Shown here piece after piece: positions 6,209 through 28,292 of a stretch of 64,000 nucleotides of DNA. The notes under the pieces were generated by a model. That model made no database searches. It was not told where the DNA came from and worked only from the letters and a program-made list of their open reading frames with translations. The stretch is taken from the sequence record OP599913.1; one strand, given 5' to 3'. Made by a program: the position numbers and the translations under genes. The stretch's first letter is position 1; each line of letters opens with the position of its first letter.

Positions 6209-6220
6209 TAAGGTGGTAGG

Positions 6221-11012: not shown

Positions 11013-11102
11013 AGAACCCACCCCCCGCTTCCTTGTCCTGTTTAAGAGGGATGAGGAGGCGGGTTCTTTACGTCTCTTTCATTTTTCACATAGGGAAATA
11101 CC

Positions 11103-11534: not shown

Positions 11535-11590
11535 AGGATTAACGGCAAACAGTCTCCCCTCCTTAGGGGAGACTTTCTTGAGGAAGACGT

Positions 11591-11842: not shown

Positions 11843-11973
11843 AAAAGACCTGGATGTTGACGCCTCATAGGAGACATTCCCCAAGCAGTACAGGATTGGC
11901 CTAGGGAGTAAACTGGGTCCATCCATCGTTGATTAAAAACCTTTTGTCATTAATCCACTTATAGGACACCGTT

Positions 11974-12441
11974 ATGTCGAAGAAAATGCCGCCGGACTTC
12001 CGTAAACTGCACCTGGAAGCCTTGTACACCTACCTGAATGAAACCACGGGCGCGTGTGTCATCCTGGTTAACACCGACGCCGGCCCTGAAGTGAAAGAAA
12101 TCGGCCAAGGGAACCCCAGCGTCTTCTTCAACATCGGAGGGTTCGCGGTGAAGTACCTTCATTTCCATGAGGAGTACCTTCATTTCGAATGTCGTTGCCA
12201 GGGGAAGGTATACGAGCTCTTCATCAAGTATGAAGATGTTTTGGGTGTGCGGTATAACGGAGACCTGATTTACCTGGGTGGGGTGTGTCGAATCATAGGT
12301 CAGGATGAAGATGGTCACCTGATGCTCGCCCCTGGTGAAATCACTCCTCCAGGTCAGGACGATAAGAAAGAATCCTCTGCCCCTAAACCTCAGAATGGAC
12401 ACGCCTCTCCGTTCAAGGTCATTGAAGGCGGTAAAGACTGA
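11974..12441 (+). CDS. sspB: SspB-like ClpXP protease adaptor
   Basis: 'LEALYTYL...VILVN...VFFNIGGFAVKYL...LHFECRCQGKVYELFIKYEDVLGV' parallels the SspB fold; flexible tail ends 'PFKVIEGGKD' (cf. ClpX-binding 'PALRVVK'). Confidence 0.72.
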   Translation: MSKKMPPDFRKLHLEALYTYLNETTGACVILVNTDAGPEVKEIGQGNPSVFFNIGGFAVKYLHFHEEYLHFECRCQGKVYELFIKYEDVLGVRYNGDLIYLGGVCRIIGQDEDGHLMLAPGEITPPGQDDKKESSAPKPQNGHASPFKVIEGGKD

Positions 12442-12456
12442 CCCCTCACTATCAAT

Positions 12457-12485
12457 ACCTCCGGTAGGGATAACCTACCGGCGGT
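12457..12485 (+). terminator. Hairpin after sspB-like gene
   Basis: ACCTCCGGTAGG / CCTACCGGCGGT. Confidence 0.55.
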
Positions 12486-12566
12486 TAAATTATTCTGTTG
12501 AGTGTATCTAATACGTACATTGACCAGAATCATTTAGAGTTTCACAAACACCTGAGGTAATCCAAA

Positions 12567-13049
12567 ATGCTACCGATTAAATCACGGCTACAAGAAATGA
12601 TCATCAATGCCCAACCCCTCCCCGGCGTTGTGGATGACATTTACAAAGGGTACGAGGAAGTTGGGGTGTTCTTCTCCAACTTCGATCGGGTAATCACTCA
12701 ACTCCCTTTCGATAAGGATATTCTCAATCACCTACCCCGGGGTGAAGCCAAGACGGAGGACTTCTTCTTTCTCCACACCATCTACCAGGAGCGGAACAAA
12801 GGTACTATCCACGGTTTCGGAGAAGGGTATTCGGGGAACATTCGTTTCCGGATTAAGATCGTACGGAACACTAAAGGGGTCATTGCAGGGTTGACCGTAG
12901 GGACTCTGGGCTGGGGGATGAAAGACCTGGAACGGGATTTCAAGAACAAACACCTGTTGCATGGGGGTGTGGATTACAAAGACGAACTCCTGGGTAAAGT
13001 GGTTCGTCATATTGAATTGGTCAAACTCTTCTACGTCGAAGACTTTTAA
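12567..13049 (+). CDS. Hypothetical protein
   Basis: 160 aa, GAGG RBS. Confidence 0.7.
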   Translation: MLPIKSRLQEMIINAQPLPGVVDDIYKGYEEVGVFFSNFDRVITQLPFDKDILNHLPRGEAKTEDFFFLHTIYQERNKGTIHGFGEGYSGNIRFRIKIVRNTKGVIAGLTVGTLGWGMKDLERDFKNKHLLHGGVDYKDELLGKVVRHIELVKLFYVEDF

Positions 13050-13073
13050 CATCTTTCAGAAGGAGTAACCCCC

Positions 13074-13397
13074 ATGGGAACAGTTCGTAAAGAAGGGAAA
13101 GAACGGACCCCTCTGTCGAGTCCCATCGTAGGTGAACTGGATTCCGTTGAATTCCATAACACCAAAGAAAACCTGGAGAATGGGACGTACCGAATTACCG
13201 AGTACGACGGGGAAATCAATTATTGTGTGTTAGACCATCTCGTTGAATCCTGGTACAGTGAGGAAGAACACACGGAATTCCTCGATAATCTACACATGGA
13301 CCATCTGGCCGAGAGAATAGGCGAGCCATACTGCGAAGACTTGGGAGAACCGTTCACCCAAGTCCTACATGACAATTTCAGTGACCTTTTGACTTAA
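13074..13397 (+). CDS. Acidic hypothetical protein
   Basis: 107 aa, AGGAG RBS. Confidence 0.7.
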   Translation: MGTVRKEGKERTPLSSPIVGELDSVEFHNTKENLENGTYRITEYDGEINYCVLDHLVESWYSEEEHTEFLDNLHMDHLAERIGEPYCEDLGEPFTQVLHDNFSDLLT

Positions 13398-13414
13398 CAA
13401 AACGAGGGGGTGGT

Positions 13415-14200
13415 ATGAACACGTTTTACATCATTCAAGTCGACCAACGTTCCACTTCCCACCCGGGAACCATCACTCAGTATTATGCCGAGGATCCCTC
13501 TTCTCGTGGTTATCCCGATTTCAGCAAGTCCTGGATGGACTGTAGTACCTTCCACAGCCTCGAAAGTGCTACTGAAGTCATTAACCGGATGCTCACTGAT
13601 AAGAACACCCGCTTCGGTGATGGTTCGGTCGATCTTCCCCTCACATTCCGGATACTGCGTCGTGATTACAACGCACCTGTTCCCGGTACGAAATACGAGT
13701 TCGATCTCTCCATTGTCGAGTTCTCCTACACCGATCCCTCCGACTTGAAAGTCAAAACAGTTGATCGCTGGGGAGTCGACTTCATATGGGGTGGAGGAGA
13801 TAAACTCGCCAGGACTTTCTACCGTGTCGAAATGAATCCCGATCAACCCAACATGCCCTACTTGCCGGGTAAGAATGAACCGAGTCTCTTCTACCCCAAG
13901 GCATTGGAGGGCGCTCACCCGTGGGTGTACTGGTATATCCGCAGTCATGAACTTGAGTTCACTTCCGCTTCAGTTAAAACTGCTTTGGAAGAGAAAGACA
14001 AGGTCATCGGTAAAATCAGTAACCAAAGTTCCAATGTGGAGCTTTACGACGAGATGTTTCCTAAGGCAGGGGATCAGGTTGCAGTGGGGGATCTAGTACT
14101 CCTGGGGGATGTTCTAGCTCTTCGTAATAAGAACCCCGATCTCACCCTGGAAGAAATCCACCAACAAAAATTGTCTCGTCGTGTTTCGGATAAACAATAA
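13415..14200 (+). CDS. Hypothetical protein, paralogue of 15228..16034
   Basis: Shares 'VDRW', 'PGxNEPSxFY', 'GAHPWxxWYIxxHELEFT'. Confidence 0.8.
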   Translation: MNTFYIIQVDQRSTSHPGTITQYYAEDPSSRGYPDFSKSWMDCSTFHSLESATEVINRMLTDKNTRFGDGSVDLPLTFRILRRDYNAPVPGTKYEFDLSIVEFSYTDPSDLKVKTVDRWGVDFIWGGGDKLARTFYRVEMNPDQPNMPYLPGKNEPSLFYPKALEGAHPWVYWYIRSHELEFTSASVKTALEEKDKVIGKISNQSSNVELYDEMFPKAGDQVAVGDLVLLGDVLALRNKNPDLTLEEIHQQKLSRRVSDKQ

Positions 14201-14269
14201 AGACAATCATTCAACAGAGGCCTCACAGGGCCTCTGTTGGTAGTTATTTCAGTAGTCAAGGAATTTGTA

Positions 14270-14734
14270 ATGGCTAGAAAAACCCTGTGTATGTTGATTC
14301 GCCATCACCAGTACGCGCTGGTAACCAATGACATCCAAAAGGGCGACTTCTTTTACACCTGCCCGTTTGAATCGACCATTGAAGGCCAACCGATTCTCTG
14401 TGCGGTGTTCTACAAGAAACCCAATTCTGAACGCATGAAAGCGGCGTATTCGCTGACGACCCTCCCCTGCCATTTGACCCTTGAAGGATGGCAGAGCTTG
14501 ATTGCGGATGCGGAACAACGCGCTATCCTCGTTACTCCCAGGCGGATCTATGATTTCCGTGGGGAGGAAATCAACGTGGTGATCGGGGAGAATAAAGGGT
14601 ATGTCTTTGGTGCGGGTGAATTCGATCCGCTCTTTGGTAAATACCTCGACGTTAACGTTCCGTTGGGAGCCCTCTACGCCGACAAGCGTATTGGTGAAGT
14701 ATTTGAAGTTATCGCTGTAAAACCCCGTAACTAG
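14270..14734 (+). CDS. Hypothetical protein
   Basis: ATG 14270 with AAGGA RBS, 154 aa. Confidence 0.7.
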   Translation: MARKTLCMLIRHHQYALVTNDIQKGDFFYTCPFESTIEGQPILCAVFYKKPNSERMKAAYSLTTLPCHLTLEGWQSLIADAEQRAILVTPRRIYDFRGEEINVVIGENKGYVFGAGEFDPLFGKYLDVNVPLGALYADKRIGEVFEVIAVKPRN

Positions 14735-14808
14735 GAGGGGTTTATGGGTACCCAAACGATTAGTTCGGTGATTAACCTACAACCTTCCATTTCGTATTTG
14801 GGTGACTT

Positions 14809-15174
14809 ATGGAAAGAACGATTAAAGAAGTATTTGAATCGATGGCGAAGAATCTTCAAGATATCCAGCGCCTGAAGGGTCCTAACGCAAGGGTATGCAT
14901 TACCTTAGAGATTGACGGGGAAATAGTCGATTTCATCCTGCATCAGGGATATAAACATCAACCCACTCCCTTAACTGCGATTATTATCTCAATCCGTATT
15001 CAGAATGTTGAAGGTATCCATCCCCAGGGAGTCATCATGATGTACAGTGATGGCGAATTGTCGATGGGAATCTACAAAGATGCTAAGTACGGCGGCGAAA
15101 CGTTGGAAGGTGTGCTTCGTGTCGCCGAAGAATGCATGAGCGAAGTCGAAGAAATTCCACACACCCTCCATTGA
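14809..15174 (+). CDS. Hypothetical protein
   Basis: 121-aa ORF in operon. Confidence 0.65.
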   Translation: MERTIKEVFESMAKNLQDIQRLKGPNARVCITLEIDGEIVDFILHQGYKHQPTPLTAIIISIRIQNVEGIHPQGVIMMYSDGELSMGIYKDAKYGGETLEGVLRVAEECMSEVEEIPHTLH

Positions 15175-15227
15175 CGGAATCCTCTTCCCCACGTCCTACA
15201 ACCCTACCCCCTTAAAAGGAAATCATC

Positions 15228-16034
15228 ATGTCCATTTCCTACATCATCCGGATTGATTCCCGTCTCAATAACCAAGGGGATGCCGTTACACGCTTCTATA
15301 ACGCTTATGGTGGAGCGTTTGACCATCCCCGCTACATGACCCACTGGTACGACGCAAAAGCCTTCACAACGTTCCCTGAAGCCGTTAAAGTGGTTAAACG
15401 GATCATTGATGAGGAACCGGGGTTGTATTCCAAGGATCCTTATCGGGCGTTGTACGACCTCTGCTCCGCAGGGTTGGATCGCCCTATAGACCCGGATGGG
15501 TCCTACACCTTCGTGATTTACATTATCCGTTGCAATTCGGAGGATCCTTCGGACCCTCGAATGGAAGTGGTGGATCGTTGGGATGTGGAGTTCTATCGGA
15601 ATAAAACCCTACCCGACGGTCAGTTCAGTTCTATCGTATACCACGCAGAGGATAACCCCGAGGAGAGTGACCCCGGACGCTTCTACGTCCCAGGGGACAA
15701 CGAACCCAGTGTCTTCTACTGTGACCGATTGGGTGGCGCGCATCCTTGGATCCATTGGTACATCATTACCCATGAGCTCGAATTCACCCACGAGAACATC
15801 GAATTCGCTAAGGATGAGAAAACCCGGGTAATCGAACAGCTGCTGAAACAACAGAGCTGGGTGCCGTACTACAGTGAGAAATTTCCTCTCACTTCCCGAG
15901 AAATCGTTATCCACCAACCCCTGCTGTTGGGGTATGTGTTGAGTAAGCGTAATGACAATCCTTCCCTGTCGTTGGAAGAGGTCCATTACCAAGAAATCAC
16001 CCGGCGTAACACCAAACCGTCTGCTCATCACTGA
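15228..16034 (+). CDS. Hypothetical protein, paralogue of 13415..14200
   Basis: Full-length colinear similarity; AAGGA RBS. Confidence 0.8.
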   Translation: MSISYIIRIDSRLNNQGDAVTRFYNAYGGAFDHPRYMTHWYDAKAFTTFPEAVKVVKRIIDEEPGLYSKDPYRALYDLCSAGLDRPIDPDGSYTFVIYIIRCNSEDPSDPRMEVVDRWDVEFYRNKTLPDGQFSSIVYHAEDNPEESDPGRFYVPGDNEPSVFYCDRLGGAHPWIHWYIITHELEFTHENIEFAKDEKTRVIEQLLKQQSWVPYYSEKFPLTSREIVIHQPLLLGYVLSKRNDNPSLSLEEVHYQEITRRNTKPSAHH

Positions 16035-16067
16035 GCGTTCCGTTAATCCTTATTCCACTGAGGGAGA

Positions 16068-16415
16068 ATGAACATGAGAATGGTCCATTGGGCTCGATTG
16101 GTTAAAGAGTGCCTCCAACTTCAAACCGTCAGCGACGATCGCTACCTGGGGGTCTGCTCGGGGTTGAGTTTGCTGTACCACAAGTACTTCCTGGCCAACG
16201 ATCTCCCCCTCGAAGCCAACTACCCGGTGCTTACAGCCGCCTTTAAGGAACGGGTAGACCTGGGCCCACCGGCTAAGGAATCGGTTATGAGCGCTGAACA
16301 CGCCCAAGAACTGGTTGAAACGGTGGAGGAGACCCTTCGTTACTACGTCAAGTTCTATGCGTGGGGTTGTAACCTGAAGGCTTCCTTCTGGGCGGAGGTA
16401 AAGGGTCAGCATTAA
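16068..16415 (+). CDS. Hypothetical protein
   Basis: 115 aa, GAGGGAG RBS. Confidence 0.65.
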   Translation: MNMRMVHWARLVKECLQLQTVSDDRYLGVCSGLSLLYHKYFLANDLPLEANYPVLTAAFKERVDLGPPAKESVMSAEHAQELVETVEETLRYYVKFYAWGCNLKASFWAEVKGQH

Positions 16416-16472
16416 TCTTCCACATCCATTCCAATCTATGTCGGGCGCTCTTTTTCTAGAAGAGGTAACCCT

Positions 16473-16664
16473 ATGCCAAGTGTATCACGTAAACAGGCCA
16501 ACCTTATGCGAGACGCCGCCCACAGCGCTGAGTTCGCTAAGAAGGTAGGTATCGATCACGAGGTGGCTAAGCATTGGTACGAGGAAGACAAGAAGGCGGG
16601 GTGGTTCGACCCCAGTTCCAATAAAGCGGAATCTTCGAAAAAGACCCCTTCCAAGTCCAGTTAG
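16473..16664 (+). CDS. Small basic phage protein (MPSxSxKQ...AAHxxEFAKKVGI family)
   Basis: 63 aa, GAGG RBS, TATG at 16437. Confidence 0.7.
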   Translation: MPSVSRKQANLMRDAAHSAEFAKKVGIDHEVAKHWYEEDKKAGWFDPSSNKAESSKKTPSKSS

Positions 16665-16688
16665 TCGTTTCCGTAATCTTTCCCTTGT

Positions 16689-16819
16689 AAGGGGTGCTCT
16701 CGTAACAGTAACCCTTAGCGGTTACTCGCAGTCGTCCGTGGCCGAGAGTATAAACAGTACAGGTCTATCTATTCCTTGTGATGGGGTGAATAGGTATGAC
16801 AATGGCGAACGGACCCCTT
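16689..16819 (+). ncRNA. Candidate structured RNA (multi-branch junction) upstream of tRNA
   Basis: Nested stems AAGGGGT/ACCCCTT, TGCTCTCG/CGAGAGTA, AGTAACC/GGTTACT, GTCTATCTATTC/GAATAGGTATGAC; no ORF. Confidence 0.4.
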
Positions 16820-16852
16820 TCGATTCAAGTGTAACACTGGGGTAGAAACACA

Positions 16853-16948
16853 ATGAGCGAATACTGCGATCTTTATGACGTATTGGAACGGTTTGTTGGG
16901 CTGGTTAAACCTGTTGAAACTGAAATCGTGGTGATCCATTTAGGTTAA
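16853..16948 (+). CDS. Possible 31-aa peptide immediately before tRNA
   Basis: MSEYCDLYDVLERFVGLVKPVETEIVVIHLG; GGGGT upstream. Confidence 0.25.
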   Translation: MSEYCDLYDVLERFVGLVKPVETEIVVIHLG

Positions 16949-16954
16949 GTTTAC

Positions 16955-17030
16955 TCCGTGATAGCTCAGTAGGTAGAGCAACTGTTTCGTAAACAGTAGG
17001 TCCCGGGTTCGAACCCTGGTCACGGAACCA
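16955..17030 (+). tRNA. tRNA-Thr(CGU)
   Basis: 76 nt cloverleaf: acceptor TCCGTGA/TCACGGA, D arm AGCTCAGTAGGTAGAGC, anticodon stem ACTGT/ACAGT with loop TTCGTAA, T arm GGTTCGAACC, encoded CCA. Confidence 0.95.
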
Positions 17031-17173
17031 AACATCGTTACCCCAAAGACTGGGACACACAGGCTCGGCACTACCCTCCCCCAAATGCCCTGCACTGTCC
17101 CGCTCCGCCAGCCATCCTGTTCTCTTCTCTCTTCCAGGATGGACCGCGGCTTCTTGACAGGGGTGACGGTGTA

Positions 17174-17220
17174 CCTGTTCCCTACCTTTCTCAGAGGGGT
17201 AGGGAACAGGACCTTTTCTT
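17174..17220 (+). terminator. Intrinsic terminator after tRNA trailer
   Basis: CCTGTTCCCTACC / GGTAGGGAACAGG followed by ACCTTTTCTT. Confidence 0.75.
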
Positions 17221-17247
17221 TATCCGCTATGTGCAGAGGATACCGTC

Positions 17248-17544
17248 ATGTCGTTCATTATAAAGGTCATGCGAGAGGACTGTGGGAATGGCACCTCCCG
17301 TGACTATGAAGGTATTATTGTGAGCCAGGGGGATCGGTTTGCTATCTCTTGGGACCCACATAAGGAACGGCGGGAGCTCACGGTTGAGTTTGCCGATGGG
17401 AGAACCTTGCTCCGGGTGATTGATGGGGATCTGTACGTGGTGAACGCGGACGGTAAGACCATTTCCGGTACCCTCAAGAATAAGCCCTTGCTCCCCGGTA
17501 CTTCCCACTCGAACCCCCGAGACAAACTCTCTTCTAGGCTCTAA
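17248..17544 (+). CDS. Hypothetical protein ('YVVNADGKTI' phage family)
   Basis: 98 aa, GAGGA RBS. Confidence 0.7.
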   Translation: MSFIIKVMREDCGNGTSRDYEGIIVSQGDRFAISWDPHKERRELTVEFADGRTLLRVIDGDLYVVNADGKTISGTLKNKPLLPGTSHSNPRDKLSSRL

Positions 17545-17564
17545 CCCGTAAACACCGTGTAAAC

Positions 17565-17599
17565 ACCCTCCTACCTCCTTTACAGGGAGGTAGGAGGGT
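17565..17599 (+). terminator. Terminator-like hairpin
   Basis: ACCCTCCTACCTCC / GGAGGTAGGAGGGT. Confidence 0.75.
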
Positions 17600-17617
17600 T
17601 TATTACGGTATAGCGTA

Positions 17618-17635
17618 TTTTAAACCTAGATTATT
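17618..17635 (+). promoter_or_regulatory. Early-type promoter motif TTTTAAACCTAGATTATT
   Basis: Close match to the 4983 and 46467 copies; 29 nt before ORF 17664. Confidence 0.7.
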
Positions 17636-17663
17636 GATGCATTAAGCCACGAGGAATAAATCA

Positions 17664-18185
17664 ATGTTTACTGAAAAACAAATGGAAGAACTCGCCGTTG
17701 CTCGTAGATACGATGTGGGGAGTTATGACATATTTGAAATGGCACTATTCCATGATGGTGGTGTGCCCTTCTTGAAACATATCATCATGTACAGTTTCAA
17801 GAAGATGCTCTCTGGAGAATCACTAGATCGTTATGCGGTTGGACTGATGAATAAAATGATCTACGATACTGAAGGCCGTGATGCCAAGGGAATCGTAGAA
17901 AGGAGTGTATTACAACGATTGACTGAGAGTGATATCCAGGAAGCCCATGTCTACCTTAATGTTTACATCACCAAAGCTAAGGAATTCCTGGAAGACTTCA
18001 GTAAACGTTTCCCTGATCACTCCCAGAGTGTCAGCCGAGAAGAGACACCCAAAAAGTTCTGCTTTGCGAATAAACCGGCTCCGGAAGGGACTGTCAGGGA
18101 ACTCGCCGCTAAATACGGTAAGTCGATCAGTGAAATCCGTAAACTCAAAGCAGCCGGTCGTCTTCATGAACTAGCACAGGGGTAA
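17664..18185 (+). CDS. Hypothetical protein with C-terminal HTH-like segment
   Basis: 'GTVRELAAKYGKSISEIRKLK'; GAGGA RBS. Confidence 0.7.
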   Translation: MFTEKQMEELAVARRYDVGSYDIFEMALFHDGGVPFLKHIIMYSFKKMLSGESLDRYAVGLMNKMIYDTEGRDAKGIVERSVLQRLTESDIQEAHVYLNVYITKAKEFLEDFSKRFPDHSQSVSREETPKKFCFANKPAPEGTVRELAAKYGKSISEIRKLKAAGRLHELAQG

Positions 18186-18191
18186 TTGGTC

Positions 18192-18332
18192 ATGTTTTGG
18201 AAATTCACGTGTTACAACAAGGACACTTGGGAAGCCCCCCACCAAATGACCTTGATAGAAGCGGTTGAACTCTTTTTGCGAGAAACCCAATACACCCAGT
18301 TGGATATTCACTTCGTTGAGAATCTCCACTAA
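18192..18332 (+). CDS. Possible 46-aa protein (not in ORF track)
   Basis: MFWKFTCYNKDTWEAPHQMTLIEAVELFLRETQYTQLDIHFVENLH fills the gap. Confidence 0.4.
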   Translation: MFWKFTCYNKDTWEAPHQMTLIEAVELFLRETQYTQLDIHFVENLH

Positions 18333-18371
18333 ACTGTTGTTAAACAATCTGTTAAACAGAAGGATAGCATT

Positions 18372-19130
18372 ATGAAACCCTTTCGAGTACCTGTTGGACG
18401 TCTCAGTAAAGATCGACTGGAATGGCTCATCCGTCATCGTAAAGAAAAGAAACGTGAATGTCCCTTTGGTGTTGCTCACTTCCCCAAAGGAACGATCGCG
18501 GTATTCGAGTCCCCAACCCAGCGTTTTCTGAAAGAGGACGAACGTGAGTTTCCTGGTCAGCGGTACGCAACGTTCGAAGCGGAAGTGGAGGGTGTAGTCC
18601 CCAACGGACCGAACAGTTGGGTGGCTGTTCTAAAGGACCGTACGGCGATTAACATCGACTGGGCGCGCAAGATCATTAAACGAGGGGAAGGCCCTCTCCG
18701 CGCCGCGGAGAATGACGTGGAGGACAACCTGTGGAAAACCAGAGCCACCCACCCCCTGGATCCTGACACCCACCTTCCCATCAACAAACACCCCAACCAC
18801 TACTACATCGACTCGATCTATCATGTTATCTACGGAAAATTGGAAGAGGTTAATAAAAATAACTTCGCCACTCATCTGATCGATGTGGATAAGTTGATTT
18901 CGCTGATGTGCGGTGATATCATTCGTCAGGCAACCTCCTGTGGTGATGGTGTTTACTGCCATTATCTCATCAGTAAGAAGAAGTTCCGCAAGATCTTCAA
19001 CCGTTGTCTGCCGCGTGCGCGCACCAGCCGGCGTAAAGAAGCTGAACGTCAGGCCAGGATCGAAGCATTCGAATACAACAGGTCGTTTGATGACCGTTAT
19101 GAAGACGATTACGACGACCCGGAGGTGTGA
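18372..19130 (+). CDS. Hypothetical protein
   Basis: 252 aa, AAGGA RBS. Confidence 0.75.
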   Translation: MKPFRVPVGRLSKDRLEWLIRHRKEKKRECPFGVAHFPKGTIAVFESPTQRFLKEDEREFPGQRYATFEAEVEGVVPNGPNSWVAVLKDRTAINIDWARKIIKRGEGPLRAAENDVEDNLWKTRATHPLDPDTHLPINKHPNHYYIDSIYHVIYGKLEEVNKNNFATHLIDVDKLISLMCGDIIRQATSCGDGVYCHYLISKKKFRKIFNRCLPRARTSRRKEAERQARIEAFEYNRSFDDRYEDDYDDPEV

Positions 19131-19364
19131 AGAAGTGTTAGAAGCCCCTTAACCTGAAGACCGCCCCACTCCGTCTTTAAAGGAATAACTCCTACGTGAA
19201 GGAGGGGATTCACGTAAATGCCGTTAAATCACACGTGTAGTCCCCAACCCTTCTCTAAACGGATCTTCGGTAGAAGCCGAACGGTTTACTTAATGGTCCG
19301 GTTAGCCTTTAAGCTACCGAGAGTGACAGATTAGATACCCCATCACTGTATTTTGGAGAAGGTT

Positions 19365-20348
19365 GTGAAACATAAAGAAACACCCTTTCAACGAGCCAGC
19401 AGCGGGCATGTCCTTCAGGTCGGTGACAACGGGTCTTGCCATGTGGGGGACAACGGCACAGCCATCGCTGGAAAAAATAGCCTCGCCACCGCTGCGAACA
19501 ATGGACACGCTGTTTCTGGAGACTATGGGACAGCCATCGTTGAACGCTTTGGTATCGCCTCTGCCGGAAATAAAGGCATGGCTATCGCCGGAGATTGCGG
19601 CAGTGCCACCGCTGGAGATCATGGTATCGCCACCGCGGGAAATTACAGCACGGCTACCGTCGGATACTTAGGGACTGCCATCGCTGGAAAGAAAGGGATA
19701 GCTACCGCTGGAGATTGGGGAACCGCTATCGTTGGACTCGATGGCGTCGCGTCTGCCGGAAAGAATGGTAAGATCCACATCCAGTACTTCGACAGTGAAG
19801 CCATTCGTTACCGCACAGCAGTTGGGTATATCGGTGAGGGCGGTCTCGAACCTGGCGTTCCCTACCAATTGGATGAAAACAACGAGTTCGTAAAGGGAGA
19901 TAATGCTGTGACAAAATTCTCTACAGAGGGTCGCGTGAATATACTCTTCCGAGGATTGGGTGTAGGTCTTATCAACGTCCAGGTCGTAAGGGTCACTAAG
20001 GGTATAGGACATCCCAAACCCTTTTTCCATATTGAGGGATCTGAAGACAAGGGTTACCGTTTGCTTCATAACGGGAGTGAATGGATTGATCAGGTCTTTG
20101 AGGCTAAGAAAGCTGTACTCTTCATTGAGTCCCTCTACCCCCCTGTGACACCCGATAAGGAGACCGTGAAACTTACGGTGTCTGAGGATCAGCAAATCCT
20201 GGTTAAAGTACGGCGAGTGAATAAGCTGGCCTTGGATGCTGTTGTGTTCCACATTGATACCCTGGGTGGTGCGTATCAGGTATCCTATACCGAGCAACTG
20301 ACCCCAGATTTCAATCAGTTGACTCATGTTGAGTTAGTGGTCATTTAA
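19365..20348 (+). CDS. Octapeptide-repeat (G-D-x-G-x-A-x-A) beta-solenoid protein with extra C-terminal domain
   Basis: GTG 19365 after GGAGAAGG; 15 tandem 8-aa units, then 'VGYIGEGGLEPGVPYQLD'. Confidence 0.8.
   Translation: MKHKETPFQRASSGHVLQVGDNGSCHVGDNGTAIAGKNSLATAANNGHAVSGDYGTAIVERFGIASAGNKGMAIAGDCGSATAGDHGIATAGNYSTATVGYLGTAIAGKKGIATAGDWGTAIVGLDGVASAGKNGKIHIQYFDSEAIRYRTAVGYIGEGGLEPGVPYQLDENNEFVKGDNAVTKFSTEGRVNILFRGLGVGLINVQVVRVTKGIGHPKPFFHIEGSEDKGYRLLHNGSEWIDQVFEAKKAVLFIESLYPPVTPDKETVKLTVSEDQQILVKVRRVNKLALDAVVFHIDTLGGAYQVSYTEQLTPDFNQLTHVELVVI
19422..19781 (+). repeat. 15 x 24-bp degenerate coding tandem repeat
   Basis: Recurrent GCCATCGCTGGA / GCCACCGCTGG / GGTATCGCC units. Confidence 0.85.
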
Positions 20349-20359
20349 GGACGTCAATC

Positions 20360-20605
20360 ATGGCTAAAAAGAACCTTAAGGTGTTCAAGACCCACGGGGA
20401 ATTCGATACGGAGGTGATTCGTCGTGCTCGACTTATCCTCGACGCCAGGGGTTACCGGGGGAAGATATGTGTGAACGCACTCGGTGAAAGTTCTGCGTGG
20501 AATAAAGCAGATCGCAATGAGGACGGTCATCGTCTGATCGACGACGACACTATCGCCGAAGTGGCTCGCTCGATGGTTTACGACACTCTCGATTACGGAG
20601 AGTAA
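20360..20605 (+). CDS. Hypothetical protein
   Basis: 81 aa, AAGGA RBS. Confidence 0.7.
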   Translation: MAKKNLKVFKTHGEFDTEVIRRARLILDARGYRGKICVNALGESSAWNKADRNEDGHRLIDDDTIAEVARSMVYDTLDYGE

Positions 20606-20615
20606 GTTTTAACAC

Positions 20616-20965
20616 GTTGACCGTATTATATACGGACAACATGTCGTTTTAATCCGCGTCTGCGGGTCCCGCCTGAACTTAAGGGTGATAAGGTGTGGTA
20701 CTCGTCGAGTATGAGCTTGGCAAAACTCATACTCCGAACCCTATGGACGGTATAGCCGCTATCGTCAAGTCACACTGTTGAGCTATTGACCTGGACTTCA
20801 GTCTCCTTTTCGGTGCTGTCGGCGGGAAGGTTCTCGGACGGTGAGGCGGCTTGTGAAGGTGCTAAACTAGCGCTGGTTGAACACCTAGCAAGTTAAGGGG
20901 AGGAGGGACAGCCATCGGCTCTAAGCAGGTGGGTTCCTCCTCCCCTCGCTCCTTTTATTTTTTTT
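20616..20965 (+). ncRNA. Candidate large structured non-coding RNA with its own U-tract terminus
   Basis: About 450-nt ORF-free gap containing at least 9 stems, including TCCCGCC/GGCGGGA, GAGTATGAG/CTCATACTC and GGGGAGGAGGGAC/GTTCCTCCTCCCC followed by a T-run. Confidence 0.5.
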
Positions 20966-21057
20966 GTCTTAATACCGTGTTACTCGACCGGTTTCTAACG
21001 GATACAGACTGTACGAATATTATGTCTTATCCCCCGACTTACCAAGAGGTTAAAGCG

Positions 21058-21534
21058 ATGTCGAAAAACAACGATCAGAAGAACCCCTCCACTCCTGAGG
21101 ACGAGAAGGCTAAAGCGGTAACCACCCCTCCGGTGACTCCTCCCGCTCAGCCAGCTCCCGCTACCCCTCAAACGTCTCCCAAAGCCTCGAAAGACGAGAG
21201 TGAAGAGGATAACCAGGACTTCGACAACATTCTGATCAATGTACTGTCGCTCTATGACAATGGGGAATTCAATAAAGAACTCCTTATTGAGATGGTGGAA
21301 GAAGTCCGTAAGGTTACCCGTCCGGGTCTTATCCCCGAAGAATACTACATCGATGTCGCCGTACAGCGTTATGTGGAATTCGCCAAACGCAAGAAGATCG
21401 ACCTGAAAAACCTGTCGATCCTGGTGGGTAATCCTGAAACCTCGGTAGAACTGCGCTCGCTGAACTTCTACCGTGCAATGGAAGGCCTGGGTCCGACCTT
21501 CTTCATGCCGTACATCATTGAGAGTAAAGAGTAA
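21058..21534 (+). CDS. Hypothetical protein with Pro/Thr/acidic N-terminal arm
   Basis: ATG 21058 with AGAGG RBS; TATG at 21021; biased codons. Confidence 0.75.
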   Translation: MSKNNDQKNPSTPEDEKAKAVTTPPVTPPAQPAPATPQTSPKASKDESEEDNQDFDNILINVLSLYDNGEFNKELLIEMVEEVRKVTRPGLIPEEYYIDVAVQRYVEFAKRKKIDLKNLSILVGNPETSVELRSLNFYRAMEGLGPTFFMPYIIESKE

Positions 21535-21543: not shown

Positions 21544-21589
21544 AACCCCTAACCCCTAGCCCCTTTAACAGGGCTAGGGGTTAGGGGGT
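21544..21589. terminator. Bidirectional terminator between convergent genes
   Basis: ACCCCTAACCCCTAGCCC / GGGCTAGGGGTTAGGGGGT. Confidence 0.75.
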
Positions 21590-21606: not shown

Positions 21607-24579
21607 TTAAGCAAAGGGATTGGTATCGGGACTGTTCTCTTCAGGATTGGTCCCATCCTCATTGCCTTCTTCACCCTCAGGAGAGGTTTCTTCTTCCTCC
21701 TCTCCTTCAGTACCTGCTTCAGAACCTTCCTCTTCCTCTATACCTTCCGGTTCTTCCTCTTCCCCGGGAGGGGTATTCTCTAAGGCGTTCTGATCCCCTT
21801 CAGGGAGATTCGCCTTATCCCTGGCTTCTTGAAGGTCTTTATCAGCCTTATCGATCTTCTTGGCGTGTGCCTTAATGACCTTAGCGTCCGCATCACGAGT
21901 CCCCGCAATCAGGGCTGCCAGGAACTCCCCGACATTCTGACGCTGACTCACAACGGCGTTCACCAAGGAAGCAAGACCACCACCCTTACCATCGTTAAGG
22001 ATGTCGTCAAATGGCATCGGGAGGTTATAGCGCCTGAAGGCTTCAACCGTGAGGACTGACTTCACTTGCTCGTTAATCGCTGTCAGGTTCTTGTTATTCC
22101 CTTCTCCATCATCGGATTCGGGAATACCCAAGAGCTCAGCAATCTGTTTCAGGTTACCCGAATGACCTGCCATAGCGACCCACGACTCCACCAGCTGACT
22201 CACCGTATCCAAACTGTCCTTGAGCTTAGCAGTCGTTTCAACAGAACTGGGGATCGGGAAGTGGGCTTTAAGGTTAGTCAAGAAGTCAACGAGAATCATT
22301 TTAATGATCTCTTCGTCAGACCCTTCCAGTTTCTCCTTACTGTCCGGTGACCAGAGTTTCTTATTCTCCGAGATCTTGGTCACCAACTTCTTCATTAAAG
22401 GCCCGTTCACGTGAGCATGCTTACGTTCGAAGTCAATAATGAAGTCTGCCAGGCGTTCTTGCCAGTTAACGATTTGGTTCAGGAGCATCTGGTGTTCAGC
22501 CAGGGCCTCAATCTGGAAGTTGTTCTGATCGTCACTGACATCCAACCAACTCCGAGACAGGTGGAAGTAGTTGGCGATCTTGTTCAACAGCTCCGTACGA
22601 CTATTCTGATCGACCGGACGGAAGATGTTCTTTTCCAATTGATCGAGCTGAATATCCGAGGCGGGGAAGTAAGGGTTCTCGCCCGCATTGACTTTAACCG
22701 TTAAGGAGTTCTCCCTCAAGGTATCCACAATCATGGGGACTGACAGTTGAGATGTTGAGAGAATACTGTGCAACCGTGGGTTCGCTTCAAAGAACGCCGC
22801 CCTGGTCGCCGCAATCCCCGCAAAAGGCTCTGCGTCGTTCTCCTGGAGGTTAATCGTCATTTGGGTGTGGGGTGTAGCCGCCTCCAGGTTCGCCAACGCG
22901 TCAGCGAGGTCTAAGGCCGCTAAACGGGCAATGTGCATTTTAGCCATTTGAGTCAACGACTGACCAATCCCTAAACGGTTATAGTTCAAGGCCATATAGG
23001 TCATTGCTTCCCCCGGGACATACAAACACCGAATCCCCTGTCTCCGGAAAATGCGTTGCAGGAAGATCTTGTTGGCTTCCTCATCGATCTCAATGCTGAT
23101 GTTCTCCCCACGACCACTGAGGACTGACTGCATGTACCGTCGAATGATATTCGATTTCGAGATCTCAATGAACTCGGTCATATCGAAATCACATTCTTTC
23201 CCTTCTTGGATTTGACGAAGCTGTTGAACCAGGTTGTTCGTACTACCGTTTTTAGGGCGGTTAGCAATCATACTGGCATTGCTTCGGTTACTCTGGTAGT
23301 ACTCGAAGTCATTCGTATTCTTCAGGAAACTCCCATCCCGAGGATCCGTGAGTAGGATAAAATCCGTTTGAGTTCCATTACTCCCGTTAATGTGAATCGG
23401 AATCACCGCTTCACTGGGAACCTTGTAGGTAATCCCCCGTCCATAGGGTGCGATCTTCAAGGCATCGACGGGTTTACTGAATTGAATGATCTGACTCACC
23501 GGATTCCGTTGAGGGAACAAACGGTTACTCAACTCGTTCAATTCACCTTCCGTTAAGTTAACGGTAGTGGCTTGAGGATCAGCAGGCTTCTTACGTTTGC
23601 GTTTCTTACCATCCGCATCCGTATAGTGCTGTTGATCATCCCCAGGGTTCGTACGAGCCACCAGAGCAGTTTGGATAATGAGGTCCAACCCTTCCGCTCC
23701 CGTTACCGCGGCAACATTCGACCGACGTTTACTTTCCTCGAACTTCTGGAGGTACAAGACCGCTGGGTTATCGGTCAGGGTAATATCAATCAGCTGAGCC
23801 AATTCCTTCGAGACAGAGTCTTTATCGTCTTCAAAGATATTGAATTCCACTCCAGCATCCTGAGAAGAAGGGTTCAGGAAAAGGGATTCTAGACCACTGA
23901 CGGTGTTATTTGTATTATGACGGGTTCTATTACCAACAAAGACACCTTTGTTCTTCACCCGGACTTTACCGTTGACGACTACGAACTCATGACTTAGCAT
24001 CTCTTTAGCCTGGGTCATGAACTGTTCGTTACCGGCAACATCCCCGGATTGCTCCGCACCGTTGATCAAATAATCGAGACCTGGGCGACTCAAGTTAAAC
24101 AGCACATAACTCCCGGTATTGAAGAGAATATCCGCGATCATTTCCCTCAAATCTTTCTCGATCTTATAGTCATTGGTATAGTAGCCATCCCAGATGGTGA
24201 GGAGTTCATCATGCAATTTTGCATTTTTAATAGGGGACGGCTGGGTGTCGTAGGTGAGGATCTTGTCTTGCTTCCCATTGGGGTAGAGTAGACACGTCTG
24301 CCAGATCAAGGTGGCTTTGTCGATATACGGCGTGATTAACCGCAAATCAGTAGCCGCGTTAATGTTGTTGCTGATGATATTACTCAGCTTTTCCAGTTTG
24401 TAAGGGTTAACCGTCCGATTACCGTTGATCTCATCCCGTTCAGGGGATGAACCGTTACGAGGCGTAGCATTACGCAGGGTCGCTGCAACCACTGGGTTTT
24501 GAGTCGTCAACGATTTACGCAAAGCAGCAAAATCCACCTGCGTGTTACCCTTGGACTGTCTACGAGATGTATCGACCAT
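21607..24579 (-). CDS. Putative portal protein (phiKZ gp129 / SPN3US gp81-like)
   Basis: About 990 aa from ATG 24579 (AGAGG RBS); very acidic C-terminal tail; divergent from baseplate gene as in phiKZ-like phages; G-x-E sites in the N-terminal third. Confidence 0.6.
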   Translation of the reverse strand: MVDTSRRQSKGNTQVDFAALRKSLTTQNPVVAATLRNATPRNGSSPERDEINGNRTVNPYKLEKLSNIISNNINAATDLRLITPYIDKATLIWQTCLLYPNGKQDKILTYDTQPSPIKNAKLHDELLTIWDGYYTNDYKIEKDLREMIADILFNTGSYVLFNLSRPGLDYLINGAEQSGDVAGNEQFMTQAKEMLSHEFVVVNGKVRVKNKGVFVGNRTRHNTNNTVSGLESLFLNPSSQDAGVEFNIFEDDKDSVSKELAQLIDITLTDNPAVLYLQKFEESKRRSNVAAVTGAEGLDLIIQTALVARTNPGDDQQHYTDADGKKRKRKKPADPQATTVNLTEGELNELSNRLFPQRNPVSQIIQFSKPVDALKIAPYGRGITYKVPSEAVIPIHINGSNGTQTDFILLTDPRDGSFLKNTNDFEYYQSNRSNASMIANRPKNGSTNNLVQQLRQIQEGKECDFDMTEFIEISKSNIIRRYMQSVLSGRGENISIEIDEEANKIFLQRIFRRQGIRCLYVPGEAMTYMALNYNRLGIGQSLTQMAKMHIARLAALDLADALANLEAATPHTQMTINLQENDAEPFAGIAATRAAFFEANPRLHSILSTSQLSVPMIVDTLRENSLTVKVNAGENPYFPASDIQLDQLEKNIFRPVDQNSRTELLNKIANYFHLSRSWLDVSDDQNNFQIEALAEHQMLLNQIVNWQERLADFIIDFERKHAHVNGPLMKKLVTKISENKKLWSPDSKEKLEGSDEEIIKMILVDFLTNLKAHFPIPSSVETTAKLKDSLDTVSQLVESWVAMAGHSGNLKQIAELLGIPESDDGEGNNKNLTAINEQVKSVLTVEAFRRYNLPMPFDDILNDGKGGGLASLVNAVVSQRQNVGEFLAALIAGTRDADAKVIKAHAKKIDKADKDLQEARDKANLPEGDQNALENTPPGEEEEPEGIEEEEGSEAGTEGEEEEETSPEGEEGNEDGTNPEENSPDTNPFA

Positions 24580-24601
24580 TCTTAACCTCTTCGAGCGAAC
24601 T

Positions 24602-26923
24602 ATGGACAATATTGAATTTAATGCTTATCTGACTGACGTGTTTCGTCTAGTCAGAACCATGGTCATCAAAATAGAAGCCATTGCCCTACGGGATAACAAA
24701 GTCCTGGAGGAAGCGGGTTATCCTGTCGGGTTGGATAAAAGGACCTGGCGGTACTACATGAACCTGAATGGGGACTACCACCCCAATGATCAGATCATGA
24801 CTATTACGTCGATTGATACCGGTGACGAAATTGTCTTCAATAAAGACAACTTGGTGACCCATTTAGCGACGGCCAGGGAGTATGCTACCGGGGGGTATTG
24901 GTTCAATCGCTTGGTTGAACGGTACCCGGGACAAGCTGAATTGATTCGCGGCATTATCGCGCCGATCCCCTACGAGGAGACCATAGAGGCCGAGGACTAT
25001 AAGATCCTCAAATACAATAAGGCTTTGGTACAGTGGAATGAGGACCAATTGATCCCTCAACTCCAAGCTTGGATCTACAGTGAAGTGGAACAAGTCTTCC
25101 GCCACGAATACCGGTTAACAGATGACTTGATGCTCCCTTTCGGGATTATGTTGCTGTATGCTGACCTGTTCAAAGCCATTTGTACCATTCGGCATGAAGC
25201 CATTGGGACGCGGTATGCTCACGATTTCTATATTTGGAGTCACATTGATTCCTACGGAGCGTTCTCCAAGTACAAGGAAAGTTTAGACCGGTATCAAACC
25301 ATGTGGTTGTACCGCAACATTGCGTGGATTGATAACAACCCCGGTCAGCAGTATACCTTTGGGAAGTTGATGGACAACCTCCTGACCCACGCACGTATTC
25401 CCCTGGCCAAGTTTGATATGGTGGAGAATACAGCGAATCAGTTGGAAGAATTGGTTCCCAATCCCCTGTACCGTAGGCTCCAGCTTAACTTGCAGGAAGA
25501 CTACGGTCGAGAAGCCACGTTTATCGATACCCAACACATGATCGATAAACAACAACCCTTGGCAAAAGAGAACCCTAATCAAGCGTCCATGTACTATCAC
25601 GACGCGTTGCAGAAAGGGAAACACAGTAACCATTCTGAACTGCCCACGAAGACGTTGGAATCCAAAATGATGGATTACACCAACCGTCACATCGATACCA
25701 AGATGTCGGTAGTCTTTAATGAATGGATTTACTTAACCGCTAAGGGGTACTTTAAAGGGCGTATTCTGGTTACCGATCCTAAATCCGGTAAACAGGTCAG
25801 ACTCCCGGTTGGGGATGCCTACTACGTGTGGCGGTACTTGGTGGACTTCGCCAGGGATCAAAAACCGGTCAACATCTGTCCGGCGTATTACCACAACGTA
25901 TTAAAAGCGATTCCTCCCACCCTGGAAGCCTTGATTGATATTGGGGGTCCTTCGTTCATTACGCCGATTATGGCGTATGACGTCCGTAACGTGTGGATTC
26001 CGGTGAACACCTTTATTGCACCGGAATACCTCATGGCGTATTCTGAAGAAGTCTACGCACTCATGTGGAAACACAAGAAGATGTCAAGTCAGTTCTACGA
26101 CTTGAACATGCGCGCGCGGATGGAGAACACCACGAAGTTCATGTACGAGTCTGGAATCGCCACGATCACGGACTTGACTACCTACCAACAACTCCTGAAC
26201 CGGTATGAGTTCGACTTTACGGAATACACTCCGGAAGAAGCCCGTAACTTTGCCTGGGAGATCTTCAAACGCATCACAGGTTGGGACAGCAACAATAACC
26301 CGTCCTTGAGGATTAAACAGTCAAACCTCATTGATATCATGATGCAGCTGTCGTCTTACACCATCCAAGTCATTAAGGAAATCGATGACGGCACGGACTT
26401 AACGGAGCTCGCCAGTGAGATCTTTATTGGGGATCCCCGGTGGATTGGGAAGGGAAATGGCGTCTTCGGGGATTACACCCATGTCCAGATGGATGTTCCC
26501 ACCCATTTCGATGGTGTTCGCACCGTTGAAGAGGTTCATCCCCTGGTTGAACCTATGATCCCTGAGGTGGCAGCGATTGCGGAAGGGTATGGGGTGGCGC
26601 GTAGCGATGATATCTTTGAACGGGTGGATCTCAGCACCAACCTGTTGGACTATGCAGTTCGGATAATCGATGACTCCTATTTCAGGCTGTTACCAGCAGA
26701 TCGTATGGGCCTCCCTGAAACTAATTATGGGCGTCTGGTATTCAAAGAGCTGCATAAGGAAACACTCGTAGGTCCAGCGGACTATGGCCGCCTTGTGTTT
26801 AAGGAGCTGAGTCCCCCGACGGTGATTGACCCCGCCAACTACGGCAGACTGGTCTTAAGAGGGCCGGTTACGGCGGTCACTCCTAGTGGAAGACTTCAAT
26901 TTAAAGACGTTAATAAGGACTAA
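24602..26923 (+). CDS. Virion baseplate wedge-like protein (phiKZ gp128-like)
   Basis: 'WRYYMNLNGDYH', 'HDFYIWSHIDS', 'LYRNIAWI'; start ATG 24602; C-terminal YGRLVFKE repeats. Confidence 0.6.
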   Translation: MDNIEFNAYLTDVFRLVRTMVIKIEAIALRDNKVLEEAGYPVGLDKRTWRYYMNLNGDYHPNDQIMTITSIDTGDEIVFNKDNLVTHLATAREYATGGYWFNRLVERYPGQAELIRGIIAPIPYEETIEAEDYKILKYNKALVQWNEDQLIPQLQAWIYSEVEQVFRHEYRLTDDLMLPFGIMLLYADLFKAICTIRHEAIGTRYAHDFYIWSHIDSYGAFSKYKESLDRYQTMWLYRNIAWIDNNPGQQYTFGKLMDNLLTHARIPLAKFDMVENTANQLEELVPNPLYRRLQLNLQEDYGREATFIDTQHMIDKQQPLAKENPNQASMYYHDALQKGKHSNHSELPTKTLESKMMDYTNRHIDTKMSVVFNEWIYLTAKGYFKGRILVTDPKSGKQVRLPVGDAYYVWRYLVDFARDQKPVNICPAYYHNVLKAIPPTLEALIDIGGPSFITPIMAYDVRNVWIPVNTFIAPEYLMAYSEEVYALMWKHKKMSSQFYDLNMRARMENTTKFMYESGIATITDLTTYQQLLNRYEFDFTEYTPEEARNFAWEIFKRITGWDSNNNPSLRIKQSNLIDIMMQLSSYTIQVIKEIDDGTDLTELASEIFIGDPRWIGKGNGVFGDYTHVQMDVPTHFDGVRTVEEVHPLVEPMIPEVAAIAEGYGVARSDDIFERVDLSTNLLDYAVRIIDDSYFRLLPADRMGLPETNYGRLVFKELHKETLVGPADYGRLVFKELSPPTVIDPANYGRLVLRGPVTAVTPSGRLQFKDVNKD

Positions 26924-27344: not shown

Positions 27345-28292
27345 ATGGCACTTTCTGCTAACGAACTCCAGGATCAGAATCGATCTGAGGTTCCCGCTCA
27401 GACGACCACGAATACCTCCATGGGTAATCTGATCGCGAAATGTATCGTCACTGGTCAACCGATTACCATTCCCAAGTACACCACGCTCAATGAGCATTAT
27501 GGTATTCTGGCTGAAGAATCCCTGGGAAGTAAGAATTCCCGAGATTTCTACTTGAAGTATTTCGGGATTGGTGTAAGGGGATCCAACTGTGATGGTAAAG
27601 ACAGTCGGGGGGTCAGTCGATTGAAGGTGAACCAACACCAACCGATTGACATGAACCTGTTTACACCCGTTCCCTTTATTGCACGTCCTTTGGACGCCCC
27701 TTTGGACAACCTTAACCGCGAGAAGTTTCGTATGAGGACCGTGGAGGCTAGAAACGGTATTCCTTACGAGTTCTATTGGTTGAAGTTGGTTAATTTCGAT
27801 AACTATAATCCAACCGAAAACAAGATCACTCGTGATCCTGTAACCGGTCTGGAGGATGTTAAACCTTACATTCACCGTAAAGACGACCTGGATAACCCAC
27901 AACCGGTTGACTTTACCAGTGAGGGTAACATTCCTGTCAGCAATGAGTACATTAACAGTTCGGCCATTTTGGACTGTTCGTTGACTCAATCTGATTTGCG
28001 TGAGATTTCGCAAGCCTGCAAAATCTACTACGGGGATGCGGGATACGCATCCATTAACGAAGTGGGTGTTGCCTATGGGGTTGATACTCAATTCCGTGGG
28101 GAGATTGCTGGAGGCGCGACTATCCAGTATACCGAAGTCATGAGTGCGGTCTTTGCCCACTACATGACCGAACGTGATGGTCGCAATGCGCTCTCTAACA
28201 TCAAGATCCAGCTTGCGTTTGACCATGGTGCAAGCGCGCCCATGCTCTTGCATACCAACTCAACTCAACCCCCAACTGGACAAGGAAACTGA
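27345..28292 (+). CDS. Conserved virion structural protein (putative baseplate)
   Basis: 315 aa, 'LKYFGIGVRG', 'PVPFIARP', 'INEVGV'; position in structural operon. Confidence 0.6.
   Translation: MALSANELQDQNRSEVPAQTTTNTSMGNLIAKCIVTGQPITIPKYTTLNEHYGILAEESLGSKNSRDFYLKYFGIGVRGSNCDGKDSRGVSRLKVNQHQPIDMNLFTPVPFIARPLDAPLDNLNREKFRMRTVEARNGIPYEFYWLKLVNFDNYNPTENKITRDPVTGLEDVKPYIHRKDDLDNPQPVDFTSEGNIPVSNEYINSSAILDCSLTQSDLREISQACKIYYGDAGYASINEVGVAYGVDTQFRGEIAGGATIQYTEVMSAVFAHYMTERDGRNALSNIKIQLAFDHGASAPMLLHTNSTQPPTGQGN

Follow-up and report, generated by a model that had tools for sequence, protein, structure and literature searches.

A conserved non-coding interval with a terminator-like 3' end downstream of ORF101 in EL-like Pseudomonas phages

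In the genome of Pseudomonas phage IR-QUMS-PaBa1-GHS-2021 (OP599913.1), a member of Elvirus (EL-like), the interval between the stop codon of open reading frame (ORF) 101 and the end of a T-run at position 20965 is, on the comparison of related genomes, a real, non-coding, sequence-constrained and Elvirus-specific element. (All positions refer to bases 1-64000 of this record, the 64,000-nt stretch that we analysed and call the window, which is 99.6% identical to phage EL across the region.) Our reading of this interval (20606-20965), which we hold tentatively at a probability of roughly 0.45, is that it constitutes a transcribed non-coding 3' tail of the ORF098-ORF101 operon, or a stable RNA derived from that tail, which would end at a terminator at 20896-20965, would be built of independent hairpins, and would present invariant, weakly paired stretches of sequence as its likely functional surface. 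We infer that the interval is transcribed, that the transcript is processed or stable, and that it binds a partner. An original prediction, made from the letters of the DNA, had instead described a nested, multi-domain structured RNA with its own terminator. In nucleus-forming jumbo phages transcription and translation take place apart, and little of the RNA biology of these phages has been mapped; a constrained 300-nt non-coding sequence at the end of an accessory block of genes would offer a handle on the stability, export, insulation or trans action of phage RNA.

The interval is constrained and non-coding

To gauge conservation we assembled 18 distinct haplotypes of the gap, comprising the ten GenBank Elvirus genomes together with contigs recovered by way of ORF101 variants; densities of polymorphic sites were computed over 13 genomes. 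Across the interval, 27 of the 360 positions are polymorphic (a density of 0.075), and the density falls to 0.061 in the core (20650-20895), as compared with 0.16-0.22 at the third codon positions of ORF100, ORF101, ORF102 and the 3' end of the portal gene, and 0.00-0.12 at first and second codon positions. Such low polymorphism relative to the flanking third codon positions indicates purifying selection on the interval. The nearby long gap at 19131-19352 shows 89% identity in HHBS8_1 and is wholly replaced in one strain, whereas the interval studied here keeps 96-98% identity. Between positions 20733 and 20821, only 20780 and 20782 vary among the 18 haplotypes, leaving two invariant stretches (Table 1) that are predicted to be weakly paired and that represent candidate partner-binding sequence.

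The interval lies in the longest gene-free gap of the 64 kb, most gaps being 40-130 nt in length and typically containing one terminator hairpin. The extent of the gap follows from the start of ORF102, which is annotated differently among records (ATG 21022 in OP599913, GTG 20929 in EL). A 1-nt deletion in four strains shifts the frame and thereby excludes ATG 21022, and neither this codon nor GTG 20929 stays in frame across strains; the conserved start is ATG 21058, which is preceded by the Shine-Dalgarno sequence AAGAGG, and the non-coding gap thus spans 20606-21057 (452 nt). That this gap holds no credible ORF, as had been claimed, proved correct, in that all of the ORFs within it are of at most 36 amino acids. 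In addition, the 15 polymorphisms in the core are split 5/5/5 across the three phases, and the constraint on the interval is not that of a coding sequence.

We consider it very improbable that the interval encodes a small protein from a conserved GTG at 20695, despite the good Shine-Dalgarno-like sequence (TAAGGGTGAT) that lies 7-9 nt upstream of this codon and the fact that gene callers called the ORF on two metagenomic contigs. The ORF is 28 amino acids in IR-QUMS-PaBa1 and 49-53 amino acids in other strains, its length varying since most strains lose the stop codon, and its polymorphisms show no third-position bias, being distributed 2:3:1 over codon positions 1, 2 and 3. Moreover, a double change at 20714/20727, described below, fits the pairing of a hairpin and not coding (it would produce one E to G substitution and one synonymous change), and translated pieces of the interval show no protein similarity in relatives. 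Another small ORF, at 20786, is broken by a 1-nt insertion in phiRU. A pseudogene remnant was also considered and rejected: the translated pieces between stop codons, searched singly against relatives, gave no significant match.

Searches place the element in Elvirus

The claim that the gap matches no known RNA family was upheld by searches of Rfam 15. At the gathering threshold the whole window yielded only the transfer RNA (tRNA) at 16955; at E <= 10, the region 20500-21150 (651 nt) yielded only weak noise of the small nucleolar RNA and microRNA type, none of it near threshold, and the region 20650-20900 (251 nt) yielded zero matches. Likewise, ARAGORN detected only the tRNA-Thr at 16955 and no tRNA-like or transfer-messenger RNA element in the gap. 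An apparent likeness of 20681-20700 to the J11/12 segment of bacterial RNase P RNA was dropped, there being no RNase P match at E <= 10 and the flanking helices being different.

By blastn against 50,697 phage records the element was found in Elvirus only. It was not found with nhmmer and blastn in 33 non-Elvirus loci, nor does it occur around the portal gene in RisingSun, Miami, OBP or any of 29 IMG/VR relatives; in the closest of the IMG/VR relatives (66% portal identity) the genes are tightly packed, with no comparable gap. Exact-pattern scans of IMG/VR viral contigs with three 18-mers recovered only EL, scans of JGI metagenomes with two patterns gave no match, and scans of GTDB genomes gave five chance 18-mers without extension. 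A 27-nt blastn match to phage pEt-SU falls within a coding ORF and was discarded as chance. Searches with ORF101 and ORF102 against 5.8 billion proteins returned Elvirus-level relatives only, and contributed extra haplotypes; homologues of ORF102, for which GenBank phages were also searched, are confined to Elvirus.

The confinement of the element is explained by its position, because the gap closes a lineage-specific insertion of ~11 kb. In particular, RisingSun gp86 has its homologue at EL 8008-10218 (E 3e-89), and in RisingSun itself gp86 lies one small gene away from the portal gene. In Elvirus, the insertion (10219-21534) separates the gp86 homologue from the portal gene and carries ~20 small genes on the + strand, tRNA-Thr(CGU) at 16955-17030, the gap and ORF102.

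Local hairpins and a terminator-like 3' end

Every stem listed in the original prediction is present in the sequence (Table 1); the nested architecture into which those stems had been placed did not withstand comparison with dinucleotide shuffles. The proposed domain 1 (20660-20832), closed by the 20667/20821 stem, has a minimum free energy (MFE) of -53.8 as compared with -52.4 +/- 4.1 for shuffled sequences (z -0.34), an energy reached by 65 of 200 shuffles. The MFE structure has a frequency of 0.004 in the ensemble and leaves out even the perfect hairpin, and in several strains the closing stem is interrupted by a C.A mismatch. Because domain 1 folds no better than shuffles, a single nested multi-domain fold is not supported by energy, and the interval seems, in these models, to be a chain of local hairpins rather than one nested fold. 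(Note that hand-drawn nested helices at ~50% G+C can persuade and yet fold no better than shuffles.)

The whole 365-nt region does give a z-score of -4.4 on the + strand, and one of -4.9 on the opposite strand. Among 49 background windows of equal length in the phage genome the mean z is -1.27 (standard deviation 1.40) and 3 of the 49 reach -4.4 or below, those at ~10900-11265, 25200-25565 and 27800-28165 giving -4.5 to -4.7. The whole-region score stems from local elements, namely the terminator hairpin, the leader hairpin and a 12-bp hairpin. The leader hairpin, in its extended form (20612-44), has an energy of -12.1 kcal/mol (z -3.2); it is less conserved than the rest of the interval, with a G.G mismatch at 20622/20634 in 12 of 18 distinct sequences and a pair at 20615/20641 that is C.A or C-G depending on the strain. 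The stem that had been described as a perfect 9-bp helix exists, and is in most strains a hairpin of 12 bp (20707-18 / 20723-34); the segment that surrounds it (20696-20756) scores z -2.25, whereas 20756-20830 folds worse than shuffles (z +1.07). In the second local hairpin (20848-20894) one pair is broken in phiRU (20858) and a U-A pair is changed to U.G at 20883.

The strongest of these signals is that of the terminator-like element at 20896-20965, which has a folding energy of -38.3 kcal/mol (z -5.0) that none of 200 shuffles equalled. Its 14-bp stem is capped by a 23-nt apical insert that is itself folded and is followed by a 6-nt spacer and then by T4-A-T8, the length of the T-run differing among strains; its U.G pairs are valid, and a U-tract comes after the hairpin, on the + strand only. 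Other terminators of this phage (17545-17610, 21546-21587 and 36328-36375) likewise consist of a G/C-rich, purine/pyrimidine-asymmetric stem followed by T's, and are of the same style of composition, but they have loops of 4-7 nt in place of the folded insert, and they differ from 20896-20965 with respect to its 6-nt spacer. Furthermore, the other terminator hairpins of the 64 kb lie only some tens of nt downstream of the preceding stop codon, whereas here 290 conserved nt intervene. A second gap, at 52941-53189 (249 nt), has the same layout, with a hairpin (~53140-53180), a 12-nt spacer and T9 just before the next gene; because this gap repeats the layout, spaced T-runs may be a feature of the terminators or promoters of this phage.

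Variation among the 18 haplotypes, which carry 27 variable sites, bears on which of the helices form, and on which strand. The sole true compensatory change converts the A-U pair at 20714/20727 to G-C within the 12-bp hairpin of SRR25799395, and argues for selection on pairing in this hairpin; the other changes there are at 20709/20732 (G-C to G-U) and 20716/20725 (C.A or C-G). One-sided changes at 20621, 20701, 20732, 20883, 20912 and 21008 keep pairing on the + strand only (the change from C to U at 20701 would give U.G, if the predicted extension 20698-706 / 20746-53 forms), as does the standing U.G at 20915/20929, which is found in most strains and is U-A in EL. At three sites (20641, 20725 and 20822, the last in the closing stem) there is C.A on the + strand, which corresponds to G.U on the minus strand, and two changes (20622 and 20858) break pairs outright. 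The wobble-compatible cases thus number seven on the + strand only versus three on the minus strand only, a count that, with the polarity of the terminator and the orientation of the genes (the + strand carries every gene from 1986 to 21534), favours a + strand RNA. Most helices are without any variation, and RNAalifold on the first seven sequences found no covariation. The pseudoknot or switch that had been proposed, whose partners include 20694 and 20883, is not supported by covariation: both positions are polymorphic and never change together.

Much of the same evidence could be accommodated if the interval had no RNA function beyond termination, its conservation stemming from DNA-level roles or from local recombination and its core stems from chance, a possibility that we regard as unlikely. 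The folding signal is strand-symmetric and is no outlier in this genome, the core is no better than shuffles, and three C.A mismatches fall on the + strand of predicted helices. In addition, the haplotypes are reshuffled sets of the same few polymorphisms, which implies frequent recombination, and there is a sharp boundary in divergence at the stop codon of ORF101. In particular, the final 100 nt of ORF101 (20500-20605) are hypervariable, with 23 positions differing between two Elvirus subgroups, and right after the stop codon the divergence between the subgroups falls to 0 per 100 nt, in what looks like the edge of a recombination or allele-replacement event. Set against this are the compensatory change in the 12-bp hairpin and a level of polymorphism that is about three times below that of synonymous-type sites on either side. 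Moreover, promoters and operators are normally situated downstream of a terminator rather than upstream of it, protein-binding sites would be expected to take up less than 290 nt, and the interval shows no repeats or iterons, no anomaly of composition or skew, and no sign of a replication origin.

Possible transcription of the interval

The nearest recognizable promoter motif is that at 17617-17635, upstream of ORF098. This EL-type motif (T-rich sequence followed by AAACCTA(C/G)ATTAT) also occurs at 4982-5000 and 46466-46484, with 0 occurrences expected by chance, and is not present within the gap. (Further promoter-like motifs are found on the + strand at 56915 and ~55090; the EL record annotates one copy only.) No strong terminator was seen between 17617 and 20896. 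With no promoter of this type in the gap and the nearest at 17617, the RNA may therefore be no more than a 3' tail of the ORF098-101 operon. As regards the claim of the RNA having its own terminator, a terminator-like 3' end on the + strand is indeed present; it does not by itself show that there is an independent gene, for which no promoter was found. The only sigma-70-like site noted at the gap (20652-20625 on the minus strand; TTAAAA, 16 nt, TATAAT; 10/12 matches) is antisense, reading into ORF101 and pointing away from the gap, and such sites are expected by chance at ~2.6 per 3 kb.

A different kind of promoter would be needed if the interval were an independent gene, specifying a trans-acting non-coding RNA (ncRNA) of ~300 nt from a promoter just upstream of 20660, with a higher-order (possibly pseudoknotted) fold and a target in the host or the phage. 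A word made up of T-rich sequence, GTC and TTAAT(A/C)C is found at 20643, 20966 (immediately ahead of ORF102) and 11946 (with a start codon 17 nt downstream), and could be an unrecognised type of promoter; it is not established as one, however, because nine of its 12 copies in the genome apparently lie outside gene-free gaps. Consistent with a separate gene, constraint is strongest in 20650-20910, the leader (20606-20650) being more variable, the proposed pseudoknot partners 20694 and 20883 both vary by transitions, and z-scores calculated from MFE are blind to pseudoknots and tertiary folds. The core z of -0.34, the ill-defined fold ensemble and the mismatches of the closing stem in several strains point the other way. 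So does the fact that 20694 and 20883 never co-vary, and there are no homologues outside the genus for covariation testing. On balance we find an independent gene doubtful.

A more specific proposal along these lines, which we consider unlikely, is that the interval is a genus-specific ncRNA of ~300 nt with its own promoter, made from the accessory block of small genes. Its tertiary or pseudoknotted fold would be missed by MFE, and invariant single-stranded stretches in 20733-20821 would be bound by a factor from host or phage; the RNA might, for instance, serve as a decoy that draws off an RNA-binding target of defence or takeover.

The interval could also act in cis, as a leader of ORF102 in which transcription either stops at 20965 or reads through in response to a ligand, a protein or alternative pairing. 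Such a leader would suit the order of the locus (conserved sequence, terminator, 92 nt, ORF102), and a read-through model is conceivable because the conserved hairpin in the 5' region of ORF102 begins 34 nt past the T-run, which leaves little room for a separate promoter. There is also precedent in phiKZ, which produces many RNAs by premature termination in 5' untranslated regions (UTRs) (PMC10914365). In addition, CUCCUUUU (20803-10) is invariant and could pair, with two wobbles, with the first 8 nt of the 5' arm of the terminator (20895-902), but this candidate antiterminator is weak relative to a 14-bp G+C-rich stem, and no aptamer family was matched in Rfam. Attenuation that is coupled to ribosomes is implausible, because chimalliviruses transcribe within a ribosome-free compartment, and the small ORF of the interval is not conserved as coding. 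We therefore judge a role as a leader to be quite unlikely.

A tentative model and the points that weigh against it

If the interval is indeed the 3' tail of the ORF098-ORF101 operon, an Elvirus-specific unit of small + strand genes, transcription would enter from upstream (from 17617, if the nearest recognizable motif is used, or possibly from an unrecognised internal promoter near 20640-20660) and would halt at the hairpin and U-tract of 20896-20965. The tail would fold into independent local hairpins (20612-44, 20652-67, 20698-20753, 20848-94 and the terminator), separated by the weakly paired invariant stretches. The hairpins and terminator may insulate ORF102 as a separate unit, and may also shield the 3' end from exonucleases so as to leave a stable 3' fragment of ~300-360 nt, to which a protein or RNA partner would bind at the invariant unpaired stretches.

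Several of our observations weigh against this model. First, the RNA has no identified promoter of its own, and the literature consulted yielded no transcript evidence for EL-like phages. Second, the T-run starts 6 nt past the stem, and a strict consensus scan for terminators made no call at 20896-20965. Third, the core is without excess folding energy, such that the term structured may not fit most of the interval. Fourth, the estimate of constraint treats sites as independent in genomes that are close and recombining, and recent local recombination could mimic part of it. Finally, our searches turned up neither a partner or target nor an enriched motif. In particular, words expected of a sponge for CsrA/RsmA (GGA) or for the anti-Shine-Dalgarno sequence are not enriched after correction for 256 words: GGAC is present in 5 copies as compared with 1.3 expected (p ~0.01 before that correction), AAGG is present in 5 copies and falls outside the eight most enriched 4-mers, and most of the copies of both words lie in predicted stems. 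After correction for multiple testing only T-runs are enriched in the interval, and a search of the 212-kb genome for paralogues or antisense targets found only chance 11-15-mers.

Comparison with known phage RNAs

The interval has the position by which UTR-derived ncRNAs are recognised, running from a stop codon to a terminator, and its sequence is kept in close relatives; candidates of this kind with terminators as their boundaries have been described in phiKZ and PAK_P3 (PMC10914365). By analogy, the interval resembles these candidates in type, though not in sequence. Specifically, the 5'UTR_gp40, 3'UTR_PHIKZ298 and PHIKZ221/302 leaders of phiKZ and ncRNA1/2 of PAK_P3 are likewise non-coding and terminator-bounded, belong to virulent Pseudomonas phages, arise from premature termination or 3'UTR processing, and are conserved in close relatives only (PMC10914365, PMC8244752). 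They are 70-210 nt in length and were seen by cappable-seq and on Northern blots, whereas the candidate Elvirus RNA would be of 300-360 nt and has no similarity to phiKZ-type genomes by blastn, or by nhmmer on a phiKZ-like locus.

As with GOLLD and ROOL, the interval is a long non-coding stretch in a phage, and the gap lies a few kb from the only tRNA gene of the phage. It differs from them in giving no covariance-model match at E <= 10, in lacking a multi-helix fold supported by covariation, and in having core energy at the level of chance. The interval is not established as a new class of RNA.

The phage also encodes a TnpB-like protein, and nucleases of this kind use structured guides of 150-400 nt (the omega-RNA of TnpB and the HEARO RNA of IscB). 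HEARO is a family in Rfam, to which the interval has no match, and a link to TnpB was rejected, the gene being 145 kb away and its 3' region being without similarity to the interval. The gene in question (genome 166226-167368) is annotated 'transposase' and is TnpB-like in having OrfB_IS605, Cas12f1-like TNB and helix-turn-helix domains. Separately, an unannotated group I intron (RF00028, 53.8 bits, E 1.7e-10) is present outside the window, at genome 155859-156211, directly after an HNH/NUMOD1 homing-endonuclease gene (genome 154849-155862).

Features of the locus and neighbouring genes

Table 1. Positions of the features discussed, from the promoter motif upstream of ORF098 to the portal gene.
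Feature	Position	Strand	Remarks
EL-type phage promoter motif	17617-17635	+	upstream of ORF098; 'putative phage promoter' in EL record
ORF101	20360-20605	+	81 amino acids; last gene before gap
Candidate RNA interval	20606-20965	+	ORF101 stop to end of T-run; 3' tail or separate transcript
Leader hairpin	20616-40	+	longer (20612-44) in strains having G at 20641
Stem TCCCGCC / GGCGGGA	20667-73 / 20821-27	+	closing stem of proposed domain 1
Stem TGA-CTT / AAG-TCA		+	one bulged A
Stem AGGGT / ACCCT	20682-86 / 20738-42	+	
Stem GACG..ATAG / CTAT..CGTC		+	present in sequence
Stems CACTG / CGGTG and GGAC-TTCA-GTCT		+	present in sequence
Predicted 8-bp extension of 12-bp hairpin	20698-20706 with 20746-20753	+	
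12-bp hairpin	20707-18 / 20723-34	+	inverted repeat; GGCA loop
Invariant stretches	20733-20779 and 20783-20821	+	candidate partner-binding sequence
Second local hairpin CTTG..AGGTG / CACCT..CAAG	20848-20894	+	-17.4 kcal/mol, z -1.68
Terminator-like element	20896-20965	+	14-bp G+C-rich stem 20896-909 / 20933-46, then T-run
ORF102 upstream region	20966-21057	+	conserved hairpin 21000-21032; Shine-Dalgarno AAGAGG 21044-49
ORF102	21058-21534	+	158 amino acids; Elvirus-only protein; convergent with portal gene
Bidirectional terminator	21546-21587	both	between ORF102 and portal gene; from terminator scan
Portal gene	21607-24609	-	faces ORF102

Upstream of the gap, ORF101 matches phrog_26983 and is a distant homologue of gp010 of phiKZ, with ~31% identity to PHIKZ010 in phiKZ-like phages by tblastn. 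Downstream of the T-run, the hairpin in the 5' region of ORF102 scores z -2.1 against shuffles, and one of its pairs is kept as G.U in HHBS8_1 (21008).

Two of the records used here call for comment. MIZ-Pa99 and vB_PQ1 correspond to PV472050.1 and PQ516283.1; MIZ-Pa99 is filed under Straboviridae though it is an Elvirus, and vB_PQ1 (184 kb) has many indels and fragmented gene calls relative to the other Elvirus genomes, which suggests assembly errors. Finally, ORF100 (19353-20348, 331 amino acids, with DUF4774 repeats) is annotated in EL and is without annotation in OP599913; its repeats resemble Bbp36 of Bordetella phage BPP-1, in a match that overlaps the feature annotated as variable region 2.

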